A DNA stretch of 63,902 bases, filler included, from Choristocarpus tenellus KU-1152 (Eukaryota; Protista; Phaeophyceae), in the NCBI GenBank assembly GCA_964200185.2. It is 11 parts of 11 records of this genome, joined end to end, with 100 filler letters (N's around TTAATTAATTAA, not from the genome) between each part and the next. Parts side by side here need not be neighbours in the genome. Positions count along the whole stretch, not along the records: positions 1 to 9,494 come from CAXNAD020003632.1; 10 more parts are not named here. One strand, written 5' to 3'. Each line of letters opens with the position of its first letter. Position 1 is the stretch's first letter. Both the position numbers and the translations under genes were made by a program. Shown here in pieces: positions 1-10,041 of this stretch. The notes under the pieces were generated by a model that did not search any database, was not told the DNA's origin, and saw only the letters and a list, made by a program, of their open reading frames with translations.

Positions 1-75
1 GCTTTACAACACCATGATTCCTCTTCCTTCGTAGTGTATGTATCATATACAATGCATTCGATTCAGGTTTCAACA
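1..75 (-). mobile_element. Terminus of a young LTR-like element (TGTTG end) inserted into the Gypsy RT
   Basis: The reverse complement of 14-75 matches 22897-22958 at 61/62 nt. It starts TGTTGAAAC on the minus strand, and RT homology (GFGLKILPALFPSYMRE) stops at this junction. Confidence 0.65.
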
Positions 76-3000
76 CCTCTCTCATGTAACTAGGGAATAG
101 TGCAGGTAGGATTTTCAACCCAAAGCCACACCTGTTATATTCCCAAAGTTGTCCATGAACGTCACGGAAGGCTGTCTTATGTTTGTCTACCTCTGCGATT
201 TCTAGTTGAAAGAATCCCGACGCTAGGTCTATGGCAGTTAAAATACCTAGAACCCTTAAGCTTATCAAAGATGCTGGTGATGTTCCTGAGACCTCCACTA
301 TCATTTCGCGAGAGATCATTAAGCATCCTATAGTCCGTGCACAACCTCAGGGTCCCATCTTTCTTACGTACTGCGACAACTGCTGCTGCCCACGCTGAGG
401 TGGAGGGTCTATTGATATCACGTTCCTGCAACTGCTTAACCTTGGCCTGAATCATCTGCGTTTCTTCGGGAGAGAAGCGCCTTTGTTTTGCTGCGTAGGG
501 TATACAGTTCTCGACTAATAGTGGTATGTGTAGTACTCCTCTAGAGCATGGGGGAACTCGTTTGAGATCTTCAGGGAATACCCCTAATTGTCCAAATCCC
601 TCTAACAATTCCACCAACTACTGTTTCTTCTTCCCTGGTGTCAGCTGTCCCATATTGGCATCGTTAAGGCTCACCGATTGATACCGGACCCCCTTGGCTT
701 CATCTGAAAGGATGTCTTCTTCCTCTGCTACCGGGCAGTCACCAGTCTCGTCTGCTTCTGGGGGATGCCTTGTCTGAGAACTAGTTGTGGCAAGCAGGAC
801 CTGTGCTCTTTGAGGGTCTTTGGGGGGTTTGGTTAGTGACTGAAAGAGTGCAACCACCCTCTCCCTATCCTGAGTATTCAGAGCAATCGCCTTTGCAACA
901 GGCAGCCCTGCCTGGACACTACTGGACTTACTGCACGTATTTACCAGCTTGCAATAAATGGGATTCCCTAGGTTCCACCATTGTACACCTCTGGCAACTC
1001 TGACAGCATTTCCTAATTCCAGGTTATACTCTGATAAGGGCTCAATCACCACCAACTGTCTGGATTGTGGTTGTGCCCCCCTAACGAATCCTTTGCAGAC
1101 TTTGCTGACAAACCCTTCTACATGTTCTACTTCTGAGAAACGCAATTCCCATTGCAGGGTCCCATCGTCCTCCCACGCTACTTCTACCGGAAGGGGTACT
1201 AGTCCTGGACTCTTCAGTCATGGGGTCAGAGGATCCTTGTCTTGGGTAAGATCTATTGTTGCGATACCTGCCTCTGGATCCGCATCTGAGGTGCCTGCTT
1301 CTGGGTCTACATAAAAAAACTTGCATGTTCCTTCTCTGGTTGCGTATGTTCACCAGTTGGAGAACTAGTGCATCTTGAGAATCTAGGGAGTGCGTCAGGG
1401 GGGGGTTCTCTACATCCAGCTGACCTGGGGTTATCAGGAGGTAGTCTGTGGTACTTGGATGGTCGGGTTGTGGGTGTCATTGATGCTTGCCACTTTCCCA
1501 GGGCTGACAGGGTGCATTGTTATCACTAGATCTGGGTGTCACAGCTCGGACAAAAGGTATCCATGGTGAGTTTGGAGCTGGTCGAAAGCCTTCCCCCTCT
1601 CTAAATGACAGTATGCTCTTGTGCTGCCTACAGAATGCTGCTCCTAGAACCATCCCGTAAGGTAAGCCTTCCGCTACTCTGAATGTCACATTGCGGACTC
1701 TATCCTCTGGGGGAAACAATATTGGCAGTATGCAGGACCCTAGTACCTGCATGGGTGAAATACTGCATCCTTTCGGATTTGCACGTGTGACGTACTTTTA
1801 CCTGCTTGATTAAGATGCGGTAGGTCGGTGCTACCCCCCCAGAGAGTAGTACTGCGCCAAAAAGCAGATGAAATGTAGTTCCAACCTCCTGCACCTGTGT
1901 CAAGGAGTATCTGTACAGGCATTCTCGAGCGGACTTTGCGAGGGTTCCACAGCAGCACAGATAGCCATACTTGACTAGTTCGTTGGGCAGTTGACATAGT
2001 GGATATTGTCGTGGTGGATGTGGGGATCATGCTTCCTATGGCTACAGTGGCTAAGTTCCCTGGAGTTGAAGACTCCAGGGCGCACCTTCAGGGTAACTCA
2101 GGTGCTTTAGAATGGGTCGGGGCTACTTGTAAATAGTGGCGGAAACTCAAAGTCCTGCATCGTGGCAAGGTAATGCAAATGGGAGTTTGTCAAGGCTACC
2201 ATCGTACGCGACTCATTCTTTGGGGTAGTACTTTGCTTGTCTTGGGAAAGATATGCGAAGTAACTCTTAGGTACTATGGAGTCGTCGTGGGTATACCTCC
2301 ACCTGCGGCTGATAAACTTGAAGCAGTCGCGACCGAAAGTGTGGTGGAAGCAAACTCGATTTTCCTCAAGCCACTCGACAACCTCATCTTGGAAAGCAGA
2401 TGGTAAAGGTAAATCCTTGCCCGAATGGTGTCGACCTGCATCGCTTGCTCTGTCTGTGGCTAAAGAAGACGTGGATCAGGGCACAGACTGGGTGGCGGGT
2501 GTTGCAGGTCGAACAGGTGCGGATGCATTGCTCTTAGAAACGAAAGAGGTCCCATGCTTCCCAAGAACAGAAGCAGATTGGTTTGTCAACGCAGCACAGA
2601 CAGTGGGCAGGGGTTTTGGGACAAAACAGGTTGGAGAATCGGTGCGAGGGCCGCCAGCACACTGTTGACCACCTCTTGGTGTGGTGGTGGACTCTGACTT
2701 GGCACCTCTCGTGGCAAGGATGTCCTGCTATGTTGGGGCAGTCCTAGTTCCTGTCTGTCTATCGGGGTTTCAACTGGGGCAGACAAAGGGTGGGGCATGC
2801 TTGCAAACAGAGCACGAGCATTAGCCATGCTACCTAAAGCAGTTGGTGTCTTATCTTTGTATGACGCAGATTTTGTAGCATTTTGATTGGTTGGGATAAA
2901 TGCGTCCTGGTCGCTACGATTGGACAATTCTTCAAATAGATCGCCAAAGATCCGTTCTACTTTAAATCCCCGCTGTACCATTTCATCTCCTAAAGGATTA

Positions 3001-4584
3001 TTCTGGGAAATTGCCAGTGGGCGAATTTGACTCCGAATCTCCTTTCGAAATGAAAATGCCATCGACTGTACTCCAATCTGATCTAGAACATTGGAAGAAC
3101 ACTAGGACTAGCTCGTTCGCATAGATCAACGAGTTGGTCTTCAGCTATATGCCTCCAAAAACAAGTTGACTCGCAAACATGAGGCATCCGCGAATCTACG
3201 GTGTACGCTCGATAATGTAAGACAAGACGGTTGGCTGCAGCTTTCCAAGATTCCCCTCTCTCGGTCCTCACCAGGATATGAACCCACTCAGTCGCTGTTA
3301 TGTCTTCCTGAGGAACCCTACGGAGTTGTCCGGTGACGCTCAGGACTTCCACTGTAGATGAGTCACTTAGGAGATCACTGTGGGACCTAAGAGAGTCAGA
3401 CAGTAGTTGCTCAAGAAGCTCAATGCAGAAAGGGGTAAGGGCATCACTACGTGGACGTGATGTATTACAATAGTGGGCATGATCTTTGGGTAAGGCCCAC
3501 GATCCTCCTTGAACCCTCCCTAAAGCCTTGGTAAGATCACCAGCAAAAAAAACGGGATTGTCTGAAATGGTTGGGGCGAAGTTATCTGCAGGTACTCCAA
3601 GAAAGATGTGGGGCCATTGGCAGGGTCTCCGAGTTTCTTATGAATTCGTTCCATGGTTTTAACACAATCTTGATGATAACGCATGTCGAGGTTGCGAGAG
3701 GCTCTGTCTCACTGCTGCCTACCGGATTGTGACTCCTTTGACTCGACTCAGCTCGTGTACGCAAATCGTGAATTTCTCTTCGCAACTGTGCCTCAACCTC
3801 TCTGGACCGACGTACCGTACTCAGGCTATTCCTCCGAGATGGTCTGGGTGATAAAGACCTGTGTGAAGAATAATAATCACTGGTCCGACGGTGACGTCAT
3901 GGTGAACAGGTGTGGCCTCTGCGTTCTTCTGTGGTCCTCCATCCATTTCGACGAGAGCGCCTGTCCCGGGATCTCGACCTGGAGCGAGATCTGTCACGAG
4001 TGGAAGACCGAAAACGAATTTGCTCTCTGCGCCTGCCTCGATGTTCAGCAGCGTGGACACGGCTGCGACCAGAATTGCCTTGAGTTGTGGTACTGGGCTG
4101 AAATCTCTCGGAATCATCGATTCCTTGGAGAATCTGTAGGTCGGAGGCGACCTCAACTTCTCGCAAATACTGTAAGCTAGACGTGTCTGCAAACCTGAGA
4201 GATAAAGGGCAAGGTGGCCACCAAAAGAAAACAGGGATGTGTGAGTAAAGGAATGCAGAACAATTGACTACCTAGGCAACGTCTCGAACATGGTGATCCA
4301 AGACCACTCATTTTATTACCATAGGCGAATAATGTGGCAATCAGAGGCCATTCGTTTTACGGCTATAGAAGGGCGATTCTCTCAGAGCCACATAAGCCAC
4401 CACACCCATGAAGACGACAAGGCCAAGGAGGAAATCCCGTAGACGACGAATGAAGACCACAAACCCAACTGGAACAAAACAGAATCCAGGCGGACGTAGG
4501 AAGCTACAAGGAATCCTAAGTGTTGAGGTGAATACGGAGTATTCTCTCCTGTTTGGAGAGAGGCGGTAGGACCTCCATGTTACA
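76..4584 (-). mobile_element. Degenerate Ty3/Gypsy LTR retrotransposon (gag, protease, RT; 3' part lost)
   Basis: Aspartic protease motif ILLDTGAG at about 1900. RT motifs RPSTSAWAAAVVAVRKKDGTLRLCTDYRMLN and, after a frameshift, AIDLASGFFQLEI...KHKTAF. RT follows PR with no intervening integrase, the Gypsy order. Gag-like broken ORFs at about 2100-4190. Many stops and frameshifts. Confidence 0.9.
4333..4584 (-). repeat. Candidate 5' LTR of the Gypsy element
   Basis: About 250-bp segment upstream of gag bounded by TGTAAC...GCCACA on the minus strand. No second copy is available to confirm it. Confidence 0.35.
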
Positions 4585-5260
4585 GCTTGCCCCTCAGAAC
4601 TCACCTCCACGGGATATGCAACTCAAATCCAACGACCTTAAAACGACGCTACGCGGTCCACAGATGATGACCACATACGGTGTCAGTTGATGCTTAACTC
4701 AGTCAATGTCTCGCTTTTTGCGTTATCAAAAGAGGTAAGGATCAAGAACTGAGTGTGTGGTCATCCGCACGCAGCCTTTTATTAACATCATTCACCATTT
4801 TTCTACAGCCAAAGAGTTAAATGAAGTCTGCAAACTGCTATGTAGATACTTCAATCATAAATCTTTATTCTGCAACTTACAGGAATTGACATCTATTCTG
4901 TAAGATTATGTTAGCATTTCAAATCTTACTCTGCATCTTCTATCAATTCAAAGTCCCTCTTACATGAGTTCTTACATATGTATACTGTTCGCACATTTTG
5001 GCACGCAGTAAGAAATGCTCGCGCTATTCACCTGTAACACAGCTACCGATCCAGTGGTGGAGCCTATCATTCATAATGGTATAGACCTTCAGCAAGAGGA
5101 TGACATACATCCCCACTGACAACACACTATGGTCAGTCGAACCCTCACTGTTTGGGAAGAAAATGGAGGATGTTTAGTCAAAATTGCCAATTTATCTCTA
5201 ATAGGGGTCAAGCTTCCAGTGAATTTTGTAGTTGGTAATACCTCTCCTGTTTCAACCACA

Positions 5261-5472
5261 TGCAGAAACAACAAGAATTGCTCCATCCATTTGAGCAGCT
5301 CCAGTAATCATACTTTCAACACAGAGTCGGCGTGACTTGGACAATCTACCTGAGCATAATGTCTTTTCTCTGTTTCATATTTCAACATGTGCTGTAGAAA
5401 TAGTAATACCTCCTTCTCGAGTTCCATCAATTTTATCGTATTTAGTAGCCTGAGCTTGCCGCCTTTTTGTTA
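5261..5472 (-). pseudogene. tufA: Bacterial-type EF-Tu relic, second half of the split fragment
   Basis: Translates, with two frameshifts, as TKRRQAQATKYDKIDGTREGGITISTAHVE/YETEKRHYAQVDCPSHADSV..K/MITGAAQMDGAILVVSA, the EF-Tu switch I to G3 region. Confidence 0.93.
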
Positions 5473-7397
5473 TAGTGTATCAGTAGCTTCGCCCTCTGGG
5501 GTTGTCCCATCATAACGTTTGATGTAGACATCGGATTAAGAAAATAAAAGCATATTCGTGATGCCCGTCACAATGCCCTCCAGAATACGGGCTTCGTTTT
5601 ATCACCATTTTGTTATTTTTTTCAAGAAAGAACGCTCATATTGGGGTTCGAACTCTGGGTTGTAGGTCACTAAGAGTGGCAACAGATACGCTATTACTTG
5701 ATTAAAGTATAGGGTTTAGACGGGAAAAACGCCTCCCTACCCTTTCTTCCTGTGTGTTCACGCACCCACTCTTTGACCTCGGTAAGGATGTCCTCATTGA
5801 CCCCCAGAACTAAACGCCCCTCGTAGTGCCCTTGCTCCGACACCTTGATGTGGCCCTTTCTTACTCACAGTTTCCGACCCGACCATTGCATATCCTGCTG
5901 CCATCTCGAGCGCTGTTTGATGGTCTTTCCCGTCGTTCATACACAGATGCATGATTCACAGTATTAGAGCCTTTACACTCACATTTCCTTCTTGAGCACC
6001 GGAAATGGGCATTGACCGTGTTTCCTGGGTAGGTGATATTTTATCAAGGCGCATAGGCGAGGGAGGACAGGCTTGAGCTGATCGAACATTTTGTCGATTT
6101 CTCGAATGAATGCAGGCGGGGAGAAAGACTTAATCAACTTTATACGTCCGACCCCTAAGTCCAGGAACAAAAGTGAATGTACGGCATCTTGCAAGAAGTG
6201 GGAGACACCAAACAATCGATATGCAAATAGTCTCAATCTCTCCTCCTCTTTTTTCCTGGCGTCTTAGTCAATGGCTACCTCCACCTGCTTCGTGTGACCT
6301 CTTCTAAGTAAAGGATTTGGTGGTATCGAAAAGTCTCCACAGTTGCCTTTACTACGATCACATTCTCCTCCGCCTTGCGAGCCCTTTCGATCATCATTTC
6401 GGGCTTTAGAGCCCTTGTATCCCAACCCTAAAGCCTTCTTTCTCGTTTCCTTAAGCCACTCTGGCTCACATAGCTTCCAAACAGCTAGGGCCTGCTGCAA
6501 CTGTCGACTGCCAAGATATTCTATACCCGGGTTTTCGCTTAGACGTTTCCTGAGTGCAATGGCGCGCAGTCGCACTGCTCTCCTCCCCAACCTTCCCTTC
6601 TGCCGGCCACTCTGGTTCTCCCTTCATCCGCCATGACCAGGCTTCCCCACAGACTTCATCACTGTACCACCTGGTGATGGACTTACCGCTCTCTTCCTGC
6701 TTTCCGGAAGCGGCAGAGACTGCAGAGTAGTGCTCTGACTTGGTTGAAGATTTAACCACGTTTGTGTGGTAATACTTCCAATGCATCTTCTCTCAGCGTC
6801 AGTGTCGCGGCCGCATGATCCCTTGCGCATTTGATCATGCTACTGTGCCACACTACTCGCACTTTCTCGTCACCTAACATCGCACTGAGTGTCACACGAT
6901 AATTGCTTTTCCGTCGCCTCTCGACAGAGAAGGTGCCGAGGGTAGACCCAGGGGGCAGAGTGGCCTCGGCGGCTCTCCTTGTCTCAGCGTCGTGGTTCAT
7001 GTTGCTGTGTGGGTCACGTGTGTGTGCGCTCATAGAAAGTCTGAAAAAGACGTAAAAAAGATGTCCGCAAACCTTCCTTTTCTTTTTGGTATCTCCACAC
7101 CAGCCAAAGTTCAGCAGGAACCTAACCCGGACCAGTGGTTTGCATGGAGTTCGGTCAACCACTTCATTTTGTCAGTTATAAAGTCTTCACCTTCAAACGT
7201 GCACTGGAGGTGTTCCCCTGTGTCTTTTCCATTAGTGGATCAGGACATAGCTTCCGTTCCCGACGTGTGAAACTTCATGGATACAAACGTTCAAAACCTC
7301 TTGTCATAACCTTCGTTTGGTATTATGTGGTTGTATAAATGTTGTAGCGTTCCGGTTAAACAAAGCAAGATTGACACAGAGGGCGAAGATACTGGTA
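5473..7397 (-). mobile_element. TIR-bounded element, copy A, carrying a degenerate ORF of unknown function
   Basis: Left end TAGTGTATCAGTAGCTTCGCCCTCTG and right end CAGAGGGCGAAGATACTGGTA are inverted repeats. Colinear with copy B. Broken minus-strand ORF from about 7310 to 5694. Confidence 0.8.
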
Positions 7398-8943
7398 TAG
7401 TGATGCCAATAGATACCAATAGCTTCGCCCTCTAGGGTGTCCCATCATAGCGTTTGATATAGACATCGAATTAAAAAAATAAAAGCATATTCGTGGTGCC
7501 CGTTACAAAGCACTCCAGAGTTCGGGCTTTGTTTTTTCGCCATTTGTTTTTCAAGAAAGATCGGTCATATTGGGGTTCGAACCCCAGTTTGTAGGTCACT
7601 AAGAGTGGCAACAGATACACTATTACTTGATTAAAGTATAGGTTTTAGATGGGAAAAAAAAATCCCTACCCTTTCTTCCTGTGTGTTCGTGCACCCACTC
7701 TTTGACCTCGGCCAGGTTGTCCTCGTCGATGCCCAGAACGAAACACCTCTCGTCATGCCCTTCCTCCAACACCTTGATGTGGCCCTTAGTTAGAAAGTCT
7801 TTCTCCCATTTACTCATAGTTTCCTACCTGACCATCGTATATCCTGCTGCCATCTCGAGCGTTGTTTTATGGTCTTTCCCATAATTCATACACAGGTACT
7901 GGATTCGCAGTGTTAGAGCCTTTACTATCACATTTCCTTGTTGAGCGCCGGAAATGGATTACCTTCTTTCGGCCTTCAGAGCCCTTGTATCCCAACCCTA
8001 ACAACTTCTTTCTCATTTCCTTCAGTCACTCTGGCTCACATAGCTTCCAAACAGCCAGGACCTGCTGCAACTGTGGACTACTAAGTTATTCTACACCCGG
8101 GTTTTCACTTAGGCGTTTTCCTCAGCGCAATGGGACGCAGTCGCACTGCTCTCCTCCCCAACCTTCCCTTCATCCGCCATGACCAGGCTTCCCCACAGAC
8201 TTCGACCCTGTATCACACCTCGTGATGGACTTTCCACTCTCTTCCTGCTTTCCCGAGGCGGCAGAGACTGCAGAGTAGTGCTCTGACTTGGTTGAAGATT
8301 TAACCACGTTTGTGTGGTAATGCTTCCAATGCATCTTCTCTCAGTATCAGTGTCGCAGCTGCGTGGTCCATTGCGCGCTACAGTATACACACTTTCTCGT
8401 CGCCTAACATCGCACCGAATGTCACACGATACTTGTTTTTTGGACGCCTCTCAACAGAGAAGGTGCTGAGGGTAGATCCAGGGGGCAGAGTGGCCTTGGC
8501 GGCTCTCCTTGTCTCACCGTCGTGGTTCATGTTGCTGTGCGGGTCACGCCAGTGTGTGCTCTCAAAAATTATCCCAAATGGTGCTAAAACGATGTCCGCA
8601 AATCTTGCTCTTTTTTTTATATTCCCAGAAGCACCCCACTAGGGCAGGGGCCTACCCCAGATCAGTTTTTTGCGGGGAATTCAGCAAACCACTTCAATTT
8701 TGTACCTTTTGAGGTTGTGACCATCAAAATTGCACCGGAGATGTTCCCCCGCGTCTTTGACATTCTTTGATCGGGGCATAGTTCCCATTTACTGGAAGTT
8801 AGTACATTCCGGCATACAAATCGTGAGCACCTCTTCGCATAGCCTTTCATTTGATATTTATGTTATATACTTCTTGTGGAAACACAGTGAAAAAAAGCAA
8901 GATTGCTCCATGACGCTAAGTTATTTATATCACTTTACTACCT
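7398..8943 (-). mobile_element. TIR-bounded element, copy B (internal deletion, decayed right TIR)
   Basis: Direct repeat of copy A lacking about A 6008-6393. Left end TAGTGATGCCAATAGATACCAATAGCTTCGCCCTCT; right end degenerate GCTAAGTTATTTATATCACT. Confidence 0.8.
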
Positions 8944-9049
8944 TAACATGGTTGTTATAAGAGATGTAATTGAAGTGTTACCATGATCCACGTCACCAAT
9001 AGTTCCAACATTACAGCGGGTTATTCTGTTCAAATGTTTCTCTTGGCAT
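8944..9049 (-). pseudogene. tufA: Bacterial-type EF-Tu relic, N-terminal half
   Basis: MPRETFEQNNP/CNVGTIGDVDHGNTSITSLITTML, a decayed form of [33 protein letters not shown] (P-loop), with one frameshift. Confidence 0.9.
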
Positions 9050-10041
9050 AATTTTGTCTCGATATAAATAATAAGGTGGAGGGGATGGGGTTGTGGTGGT
9101 GATGGATAAAGGTGACGACGGTACACGAGACAGGCAGTGGCGAAGAACAAGTATAGGTGGAGGGTTTAACCCAGCTCTAGGAATAGACCACAGACTTCGA
9201 TTTCGCACAACGGAGAAGGATGGACAGAGAACAGAATGGGCCCATATGAGGACGAGGTGGAGGTGATCAAGGTTGGGAATGGCGGCCCATGAGATAGGTA
9301 CGGGCAAGGGGGGAACATAAGCAGAGCACACCACTCCTCTTCGGGAATAGGTAAACACGTTTCGTCTCTGCAGGATTGTGAAGCCCGAACGAGCACACAG
9401 GGGGATGGGGCCAGAGAGGTGGTAGAGGCACATGACGATGGTAGCAGGGATAGGGACCCACCCCTACACGGCGACGAGGAGGAGGAGGCAGGAGNNNNNN
9501 NNNNNNNNNNNNNNNNNNNNNNNNNNNNNNNNNNNNNNTTAATTAATTAANNNNNNNNNNNNNNNNNNNNNNNNNNNNNNNNNNNNNNNNNNNNGGGGGG
9601 GGGGGGGGGGGGGGGGGGGGGTAAAAGAGAGGGAGGGGGGGAAGGAGGGAGGGAGGGAAAGAACAAGGTGTGTTTACCTTTCAAGGGGTACTGGTGGGGA
9701 GAGAGCTCCCATTCAGCCTTTACGATGAGGCAGAAGGACTGATACCATACTATTGTTGTAGATTCAGTTCAAAAAATAAATGAGATCATACCTTCTCCCG
9801 CTGCGTACTTTGACTGTTGTGGTCTCTATCTTAACCAATCCGATCGCGACGGCACGAAGAGCAGGAGGCTCAACCAATCACAGTACAGTACAGTCAGTAC
9901 AGCATTGCTGCTAACACCACCAATAGCAACCATTAAAAAAGAAGAAAGAGGATTCCCCATCACGGAATATTCCTCACCAGAACGCGCATATATCATTAGC
10001 ACCAAAACAGATGGGAAAAAAAAAGAAGTGTGCATTCTCAC

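Follow-up and report, generated by a model that had tools for sequence, protein, structure and literature searches.

The sequence analysed here, contig C3632 in its full length, comes from the brown alga Choristocarpus tenellus KU-1152 (GenBank assembly GCA_964200185.2; 164 Mb in 27,310 contigs) and makes up positions 1 to 9,494 of a joined stretch of 63,902 nucleotides, filler included. On its minus strand lies a decayed fragment of a bacterial-type tuf gene, the gene of EF-Tu. With a probability of about 0.75, we regard this fragment as DNA of a Rickettsiaceae bacterium nearest to 'Candidatus Megaira' which, with the 5' part of tuf included, came to lie in the nucleus of C. tenellus, decayed there and was split by transposable elements (TEs). 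An earlier note, made from the sequence alone, had proposed that DNA of an intracellular bacterium entered the nuclear genome and was then pseudogenised and invaded by a TE, and our analysis supports this proposal as to the kind of donor, the position in the nuclear genome and the subsequent invasion by TEs.

Translation of the minus strand at 9049-8944 and 5472-5261 yields residues 1-108 of a bacterial-type EF-Tu, distributed over five pieces (Table 1). The two blocks that the earlier note had recognized are confirmed by this translation and by two profile searches: the EF-Tu hidden Markov model TIGR00485 matches at 5258-5476 (E 1.7e-10, 46 bits), 5317-5391 and 8932-9030, and Pfam PF00009 (GTP_EFTU) gives a weak match to each of the pieces. 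Because residues 1-108 alone remain, the TIGR00485 scores stay far below the 522-bit full-length cut-off and are to be read as homology-level matches. A PDB sequence search with a 30-amino-acid piece of the relic returned weak EF-Tu matches that were uninformative on its origin. In comparison with close EF-Tu sequences, the relic has lost 2 nt of the His-12 codon, right after the first piece, a deletion that causes a first frameshift; its P-loop reads GDVDHGNT in place of GHVDHGKT, with His replaced by Asp and Lys by Asn; in the third piece three codons of the APEE segment are deleted in frame, and a +1 insertion after VE, at the end of this piece, causes a second frameshift; and in the fourth piece the switch II motif DCPGH has become DCPSH (Gly to Ser), before an indel cluster ahead of MITG closes the piece with a third frameshift. 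Tblastn with a complete EF-Tu as query detected no EF-Tu-like sequence below position 5261, and the relic is therefore truncated there, residues 1-108 surviving. When tested for membership of the EF-Tu family, neither the P-loop GHVDHGKT nor switch II DCPGH nor the open reading frame (ORF) was found intact. With three frameshifts, a 3-codon deletion, a lost P-loop lysine and a truncation, the tuf relic is a pseudogene that encodes no working EF-Tu, which bears out the pseudogenisation with frameshifts proposed before and extends it with further lesions.

The TA-targeted insertion that had been proposed to split the gene was confirmed, and could be refined to two nested copies, X and Y, of one terminal inverted repeat (TIR) element. 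Repeat analysis of the insert between the EF-Tu halves revealed two direct copies and a 21-nt inverted repeat, and X and Y together with their TA duplications account for all bases between the two halves. The two elements are 78-92% identical, varying by segment, and the TIRs measure about 30 bp (TAGTGGTACCAGTAGCTTCGCCCTCTGGGG). A search with the 1920-bp unit at 5478-7397 gave 1017 first-look candidates in the host genome, the full-length copies being 81-85% identical and spread over many contigs. From eight other genomic copies it appears that the family of X ends 5-6 bases (nominally six) beyond the ends of this unit, with the termini TAGTGGTACCAGTAGC... and ...CTACTGGTACCAC(N)T and a TA on each side. 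Host contigs on which copies of the TIR element sit include, for example, L188-L198. Excision of 5473-8945 joins ...ITTML directly to TKRRQ... in frame and at the length found in the nearest Rickettsiaceae EF-Tu, in agreement with the canonical spacing claimed at the outset. TIRs and a 2-bp TA duplication, which characterise a TA-targeting TIR DNA transposon (Tc1/mariner-like), are both present, and neither a transposase nor a Pfam domain was found in the ORFs of at least 80 amino acids of X and Y. Because no DDE/D transposase was found in these ORFs, we do not file the element as Tc1/mariner; it is either a non-autonomous derivative or a member of another superfamily.

High-copy host repeats border the relic on both sides. 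A query with positions 1-5260, comprising repeats B and C, gave 2219 first-look candidates in the host genome, and the diverged tail of repeat C (4833-5039) follows 3267-4651 in the same order on other contigs; on the other side, the boundary of repeat D is marked by copy ends that cluster at positions 117-133 of query 8946-9494. Contig C3632 consists almost wholly of repeats, B, C and D being unclassified high-copy families. The earlier note had also adduced a neighbouring Gypsy element, which is not supported in this contig, as the ORFs of at least 80 amino acids in the flanks and the insert (20 ORFs) contain no Gypsy or other Pfam domain; the contig furthermore holds no tRNA and no Rfam family. 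Since the relic contains nested host TEs flanked by TA duplications and is bordered on both sides by high-copy host repeats, it is located in nuclear DNA, and at the level of the assembly it is physically continuous with the host nuclear DNA. Moreover, the host assembly contains no intact bacterial tuf, no VirB4 and no bacterial-type rpsJ besides the plastid copy, and a living symbiont genome therefore does not explain the relic. A fragmented assembly such as this one could in principle join bacterial reads to algal repeats, so that the contig would be a chimera or a contamination; such an artefact would however produce neither a TE insertion with exact TA duplications whose removal restores the frame nor multiple inactivating lesions, and the blank searches for another intact bacterial tuf and for VirB4 speak against it as well. 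We consider it very improbable.

Table 1. Features of contig C3632 and their coordinates; a dot stands where no strand applies
Feature	Position	Strand	Remarks
EF-Tu relic piece 1	9017..9049	-	start codon and residues 1-11, MPRETFEQNNP; differs from bacterial consensus
EF-Tu relic piece 2	8944..9015	-	CNVGTIGDVDHGNTSITSLITTML; residues 13-36, carries G1/P-loop
EF-Tu relic piece 3	5381..5470	-	TKRRQAQATKYDKIDGTREGGITISTAHVE; residues 37-69, variable region and GITISTAHVE
EF-Tu relic piece 4	5311..5379	-	YETEKRHYAQVDCPSHADSVLKV; residues 70-89 = YETEKRHYAQVDCPSHADSV
EF-Tu relic piece 5	5261..5311	-	MITGAAQMDGAILVVSA; residues 92-108, same as consensus; gene cut off at 5261
Remnant of bacterial tuf 5' leader	9050..9067	-	degenerate Shine-Dalgarno, CGAG for GGAG; aligned with the L155 and L158 tuf leaders
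TA target-site duplication of element X, left copy	5471..5472	.	right copy at 8944-8945
Outer TIR element X, main/left part	5473..7397	+	stops at a TA within its own right TIR, the target of Y
Inner element Y	7398..8935	+	shorter copy of the same family, nested in the right TIR of X
TA duplication of element Y	7396-7397 and 8936-8937		
Last six bases of element X	8938..8943	+	CTACCT (family consensus CCACCT); split off by Y
Host repeat B	76..3268	.	copies 86-92% identical; no Pfam domain in its ORFs
Host repeat C	3267..5260	.	3267-4651 matches many contigs at 82-91%; adjoins the truncated 3' end of the relic
Host repeat D	9068..9494	.	136 first-look candidates, copies 81-89% identical; borders the 5' side of the relic

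The fragment on C3632, further called relic 1, resembles Rickettsiales sequences at both the DNA and the protein level. Among 301 genomes of the order containing Deianiraea, tuf DNA of Rickettsiales is 74-82% identical to the relic, several of the matches running through the variable region. At the protein level, identity reaches 74-76% to the sequences L155 and L158 and to mostly unnamed metagenomic sequences, Rickettsiaceae metagenome-assembled genomes (MAGs) included, a metagenomic set that lies close to Ca. Megaira venefica. In a strict search of an even sample of 401 alphaproteobacterial genomes, the variable piece matched six small genomes (1.0-1.7 Mb) at E <= 5e-4. The motif AQATxYD, which had been taken for an alphaproteobacterial or Rickettsiales feature, proved not to be diagnostic: an exact scan of GTDB genomes for AQATxYDxID found, among the matches listed, Clostridia, Verrucomicrobiota, Gemmatimonadota, Patescibacteria and others next to Rickettsia and Deianiraea, and since it occurs in many phyla it was dropped as a signature.

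Free maximum likelihood trees calculated with a 'quick' search were unstable, the relic joining L155 and L158 beside the Rickettsia clade in two runs and falling near the root under LG+G4. Because of this instability, exhaustive placement on a fixed reference tree was adopted. This EF-Tu tree of 41 rows was built without the relic and comprised six brown-algal plastid rows, 23 genome-sample rows (20 from the Rickettsiales-order sample and three from the class-wide alphaproteobacterial sample), named Rickettsiaceae, Megaira, Hyphomicrobiaceae and others; all 79 attachment points were evaluated. For relic 1, 97% of the likelihood weight fell in the clade of L155, L158, P0143, P0146, P0185, P0208 and P0221, in which P0143 is a Rickettsiaceae MAG and P0146 belongs to Megaira, with Ca. 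Megaira venefica in the clade. An EF-Tu tree, which the earlier note had put forward as a check, here with brown-algal plastid tufA included, assigns relic 1 to a Rickettsiaceae/Megaira clade.

The same note had suggested searching the assembly for further bacterial relics; VirB4 and Rickettsiaceae-type rpsJ gave nothing, and a profile search for EF-Tu found a second tuf fragment. This relic 2 (C319:17502-17642, corresponding to L020:1501-1641, minus strand) is a decayed EF-Tu stretch of 47 residues that covers residues 196-244. Its identity amounts to 32/47 with P0185 and 28-31/47 with the other Megaira-group rows. When placed alone, its best branch is the terminal branch of P0185 (weight 0.33, with 0.745 in the Megaira-group clade), a row that had not been picked by similarity to relic 2. 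Both relics combined put a weight of 0.997 in the Megaira-group clade, and the 19 placements that remain unrejected at the 0.05 level all fall among Rickettsiales-order sample rows or with an unclassified alphaproteobacterial MAG, none of them being with Hyphomicrobiaceae, plastids or Bacillota. Relic 2 probably derives from the same donor as relic 1, and possibly from the same tuf gene. The nearest relative of both relics, P0185, lies on a bacterial contig of 13,447 bp within a large NCBI assembly, GCA_024449895.1, which may be a eukaryotic genome project carrying a Megaira-like symbiont. On that contig tuf is directly followed by the S10 ribosomal operon, an arrangement that has been described for Rickettsia.

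These weights also bear on the alternative that the donor was another AT-rich alphaproteobacterium, for instance of Holosporales or SAR11-like type, or that an integrated giant virus or some other vector brought the DNA in. With relic 1 by itself, placement among the Hyphomicrobiaceae lies 8.5 log-likelihood units below the best one (dlnL) and is not rejected by the approximately unbiased (AU) test (p-AU 0.15), many metagenomic EF-Tu sequences reach the same 74-76% identity to the relic, and sampling beyond the Rickettsiales is thin. Conversely, relic 1 puts a weight of 0.97 in the Megaira-group clade, in which the members with names belong to Rickettsiaceae or Rickettsiales, and this weight rises to the value given above for both relics; the variable piece found its matches in just six small genomes of the 401 alphaproteobacterial ones, so that we judge another donor or a vector to be quite unlikely.

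An origin from a host organelle had to be weighed as well. The only intact tuf in the assembly is the plastid tufA on contig C1 (120,357 bp; L001, L014), where it adjoins rps7; its product is 100% identical to the deposited C. tenellus protein and has brown-algal plastid tufA as its next relatives. Contig C1 itself belongs to the plastid genome and shows the gene order of the red lineage, rps7-tufA-rps10. If relic 1 were an old nuclear plastid DNA insertion (NUPT) of this gene, its AT-richness and its lack of introns would follow, both being shared by plastid tufA, which is moreover 79% identical to the relic in DNA over 149 bases, although in the conserved part only, and whose protein has R3 and E4 in common with the N-terminus of the relic. 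In addition, the grouping of relic and plastid was left unrejected by one AU test (p-AU 0.57) in which a single, unanchored row represented the plastid, and the tree constrained to this grouping had a log-likelihood 3.3 above that of the free-search tree, having been missed by the quick search. When six brown-algal rows represent the plastid in the reference tree, however, any plastid branch for relic 1 lies at a dlnL of 18.5-24.7 with p-AU values of 0.001-0.008, one terminal branch at 0.056 excepted, and for both relics together the best plastid placement is at dlnL 35. Protein identity to the host plastid tufA is 66%, compared to the 74-76% found for Rickettsiaceae-type sequences; among the sites that distinguish L155 from the plastid protein, the relic shares the L155 state at 13 and the plastid state at three, the L155-like sites including those in PHCN, KTS, QAQ, KYD, IDG, ITIS and ETxK; and Rickettsiales tuf DNA matches the relic as well or better, with the variable region included. 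Placement with plastid tufA, which the earlier note had named as an outcome that would refute it, was thus disfavoured, and a NUPT is in our view extremely improbable.

The other organellar candidate is a dead intronless copy, by retrocopying or duplication, of the host's nuclear gene for mitochondrial EF-Tu, a protein that is itself alphaproteobacterial in type and ancestry. Of this gene two exons, for residues 152-251, were found on contig C13994 (L026:2-112 and 1523-1777, minus strand), and exons for residues 1-150 were found nowhere in the assembly; the gene is either incompletely assembled or has very small 5' exons. Several characteristics of the relics argue against such a copy. The GC content of relic 1, 37%, is below the 51-53% of the host mitochondrial EF-Tu exons, the 48% of the TEs next to it and the 45-48% of the DNA around it. 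Its ATG stands at the bacterial start position, as had been observed before, without a presequence and preceded by a remnant of a tuf leader: up to and including the ATG, 12/16 bases agree with the tuf leader of L158 (Rickettsiales), including the Shine-Dalgarno remnant in which GGAG has become CGAG. This AT-rich leader stretch stops where host repeat D starts, at about 9062-9078. As the leader was kept together with its Shine-Dalgarno remnant, a transfer of bacterial DNA is favoured over a copy of a host mRNA. Across this border a 140-amino-acid ORF (9011-9433, minus strand) leads from host repeat D in frame into the ATG and the first 12 codons of the relic; its continuity looks accidental because its upstream part is a dispersed repeat and the ORF has no Pfam match. 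Furthermore, relic 1 is placed nested within the Rickettsiaceae and not basal to them. Relic 2, which overlaps the host exons and runs continuously across an intron position of the host mitochondrial EF-Tu gene, is identical to these exons at 21/42 residues, compared to up to 32/47 for Rickettsiaceae (23/47 for the host plastid tufA), and shares Q, I, S and I with Rickettsiaceae at positions at which the host mitochondrial EF-Tu differs. An origin from the mitochondrial EF-Tu gene is accordingly improbable in our estimation. The relics appear to group with an intracellular bacterial lineage and not with an organelle of the host, mitochondrial EF-Tu being compared for relic 2 only.

A Rickettsiaceae donor nevertheless has a number of points to its disadvantage. 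Apart from the instability of the free trees, the single AU test that tolerated the plastid and the unrejected Hyphomicrobiaceae placement, relic 1 draws its signal from about 100 residues, themselves decayed, of a protein that is very conserved. Similarity to L155 or to the relic itself largely decided which rows entered the reference tree, and the tree includes no eukaryotic mitochondrial EF-Tu and hence no mitochondrial N-termini, while the N-terminal exons of the host's own gene are not in the assembly, so that relic 1 has no direct counterpart for comparison. Combining both relics assumes one donor, and the junctions between relic and repeats are known at the assembly level only.

As a Rickettsiaceae relic, the locus probably came about as follows. 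DNA of an AT-rich alphaproteobacterium, a member of the Rickettsiaceae nearest to 'Ca. Megaira' and presumably intracellular in lifestyle, would have entered the nucleus of C. tenellus or of an ancestor, conceivably when DNA from a lysed endosymbiont was joined into a chromosome break, and would have carried the tuf leader and the 5' part of the gene with it. In the host this tuf may never have been functional, or may soon have lost its function. The sequence itself shows that it gathered frameshifts, the 3-codon deletion and substitutions at invariant catalytic residues, and that host repeats have taken the place of the 3' part of tuf and of the region upstream. It also shows that the high-copy, TA-targeting TIR element entered the TA that separates codon 36 from codon 37, and that another copy of this family later entered the terminal repeat of the first. 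The order of transfer, decay and TE insertions that we propose is itself a reconstruction.

Relics of endosymbionts in the nucleus are already known from other hosts, and C. tenellus adds a case. A direct precedent comes from Volvox carteri, whose nucleus contains rickettsial gene-like DNA (2015, PMC4324946). In both algae Rickettsiaceae-derived DNA lies in the nucleus of a host that is now without the bacterium, which in Volvox was read as endosymbiotic gene transfer dating from an earlier infection. The Volvox region, in a green alga, spans about 9 kb with four gene-like sequences (PMC4324946), whereas C. tenellus, an early-branching brown alga, has about 340 bp of tuf plus a second fragment of ~140 bp elsewhere, and its relic is more decayed and broken by nested TEs. 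In the paper library searched, no report of rickettsial DNA in brown-algal or Choristocarpus nuclei came up. Nuclear Wolbachia transfers, reportedly described in arthropods and nematodes by Dunning Hotopp et al. in 2007, are similar in that DNA of Rickettsiales endosymbionts lies in host chromosomes, mostly non-functional, decaying and colonised by host repeats. They involve another donor family and another host kingdom, however, and are often large and recent with near-identical living donors, in contrast to the C. tenellus relic, for which no sequence nearer than about 75% protein identity is known. The bacterial group to which the closest named relatives of the relic belong has living members that associate with brown algae and were assembled as separate genomes; unlike these, C. 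tenellus holds the nuclear fossil alone, with no bacterial genome in the assembly. Finally, the relic shares with NUPTs and their mitochondrial equivalents (NUMTs) the non-homologous insertion of AT-rich prokaryote-type DNA followed by neutral decay, and differs from NUPTs in that the placements disfavour the host plastid as its source; brown-algal mitochondrial genomes, to our knowledge, carry no tufA.

The direct biological consequence of this finding is small, as the fragment is short, dead and functionless. For annotation it is a caution that a bacterial-looking tuf fragment in an algal assembly may be neither contamination nor plastid DNA. Megaira-group Rickettsiaceae are common partners of algae, but we know of almost no documentation of their history with brown algae. 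Nuclear relics of intracellular bacteria record past symbioses that are invisible in living material, and dating such a relic in an early-branching brown alga would demonstrate an old association. Tentatively, both tuf fragments could be all that is still visible of a longer stretch of Megaira-like genome, taken up early in the brown-algal lineage and possibly before the Discosporangiales diverged from the other brown algae, which we consider rather unlikely; if true, orthologous relics in other species could date an ancient symbiosis between Rickettsiaceae and brown algae that has no living partner here.

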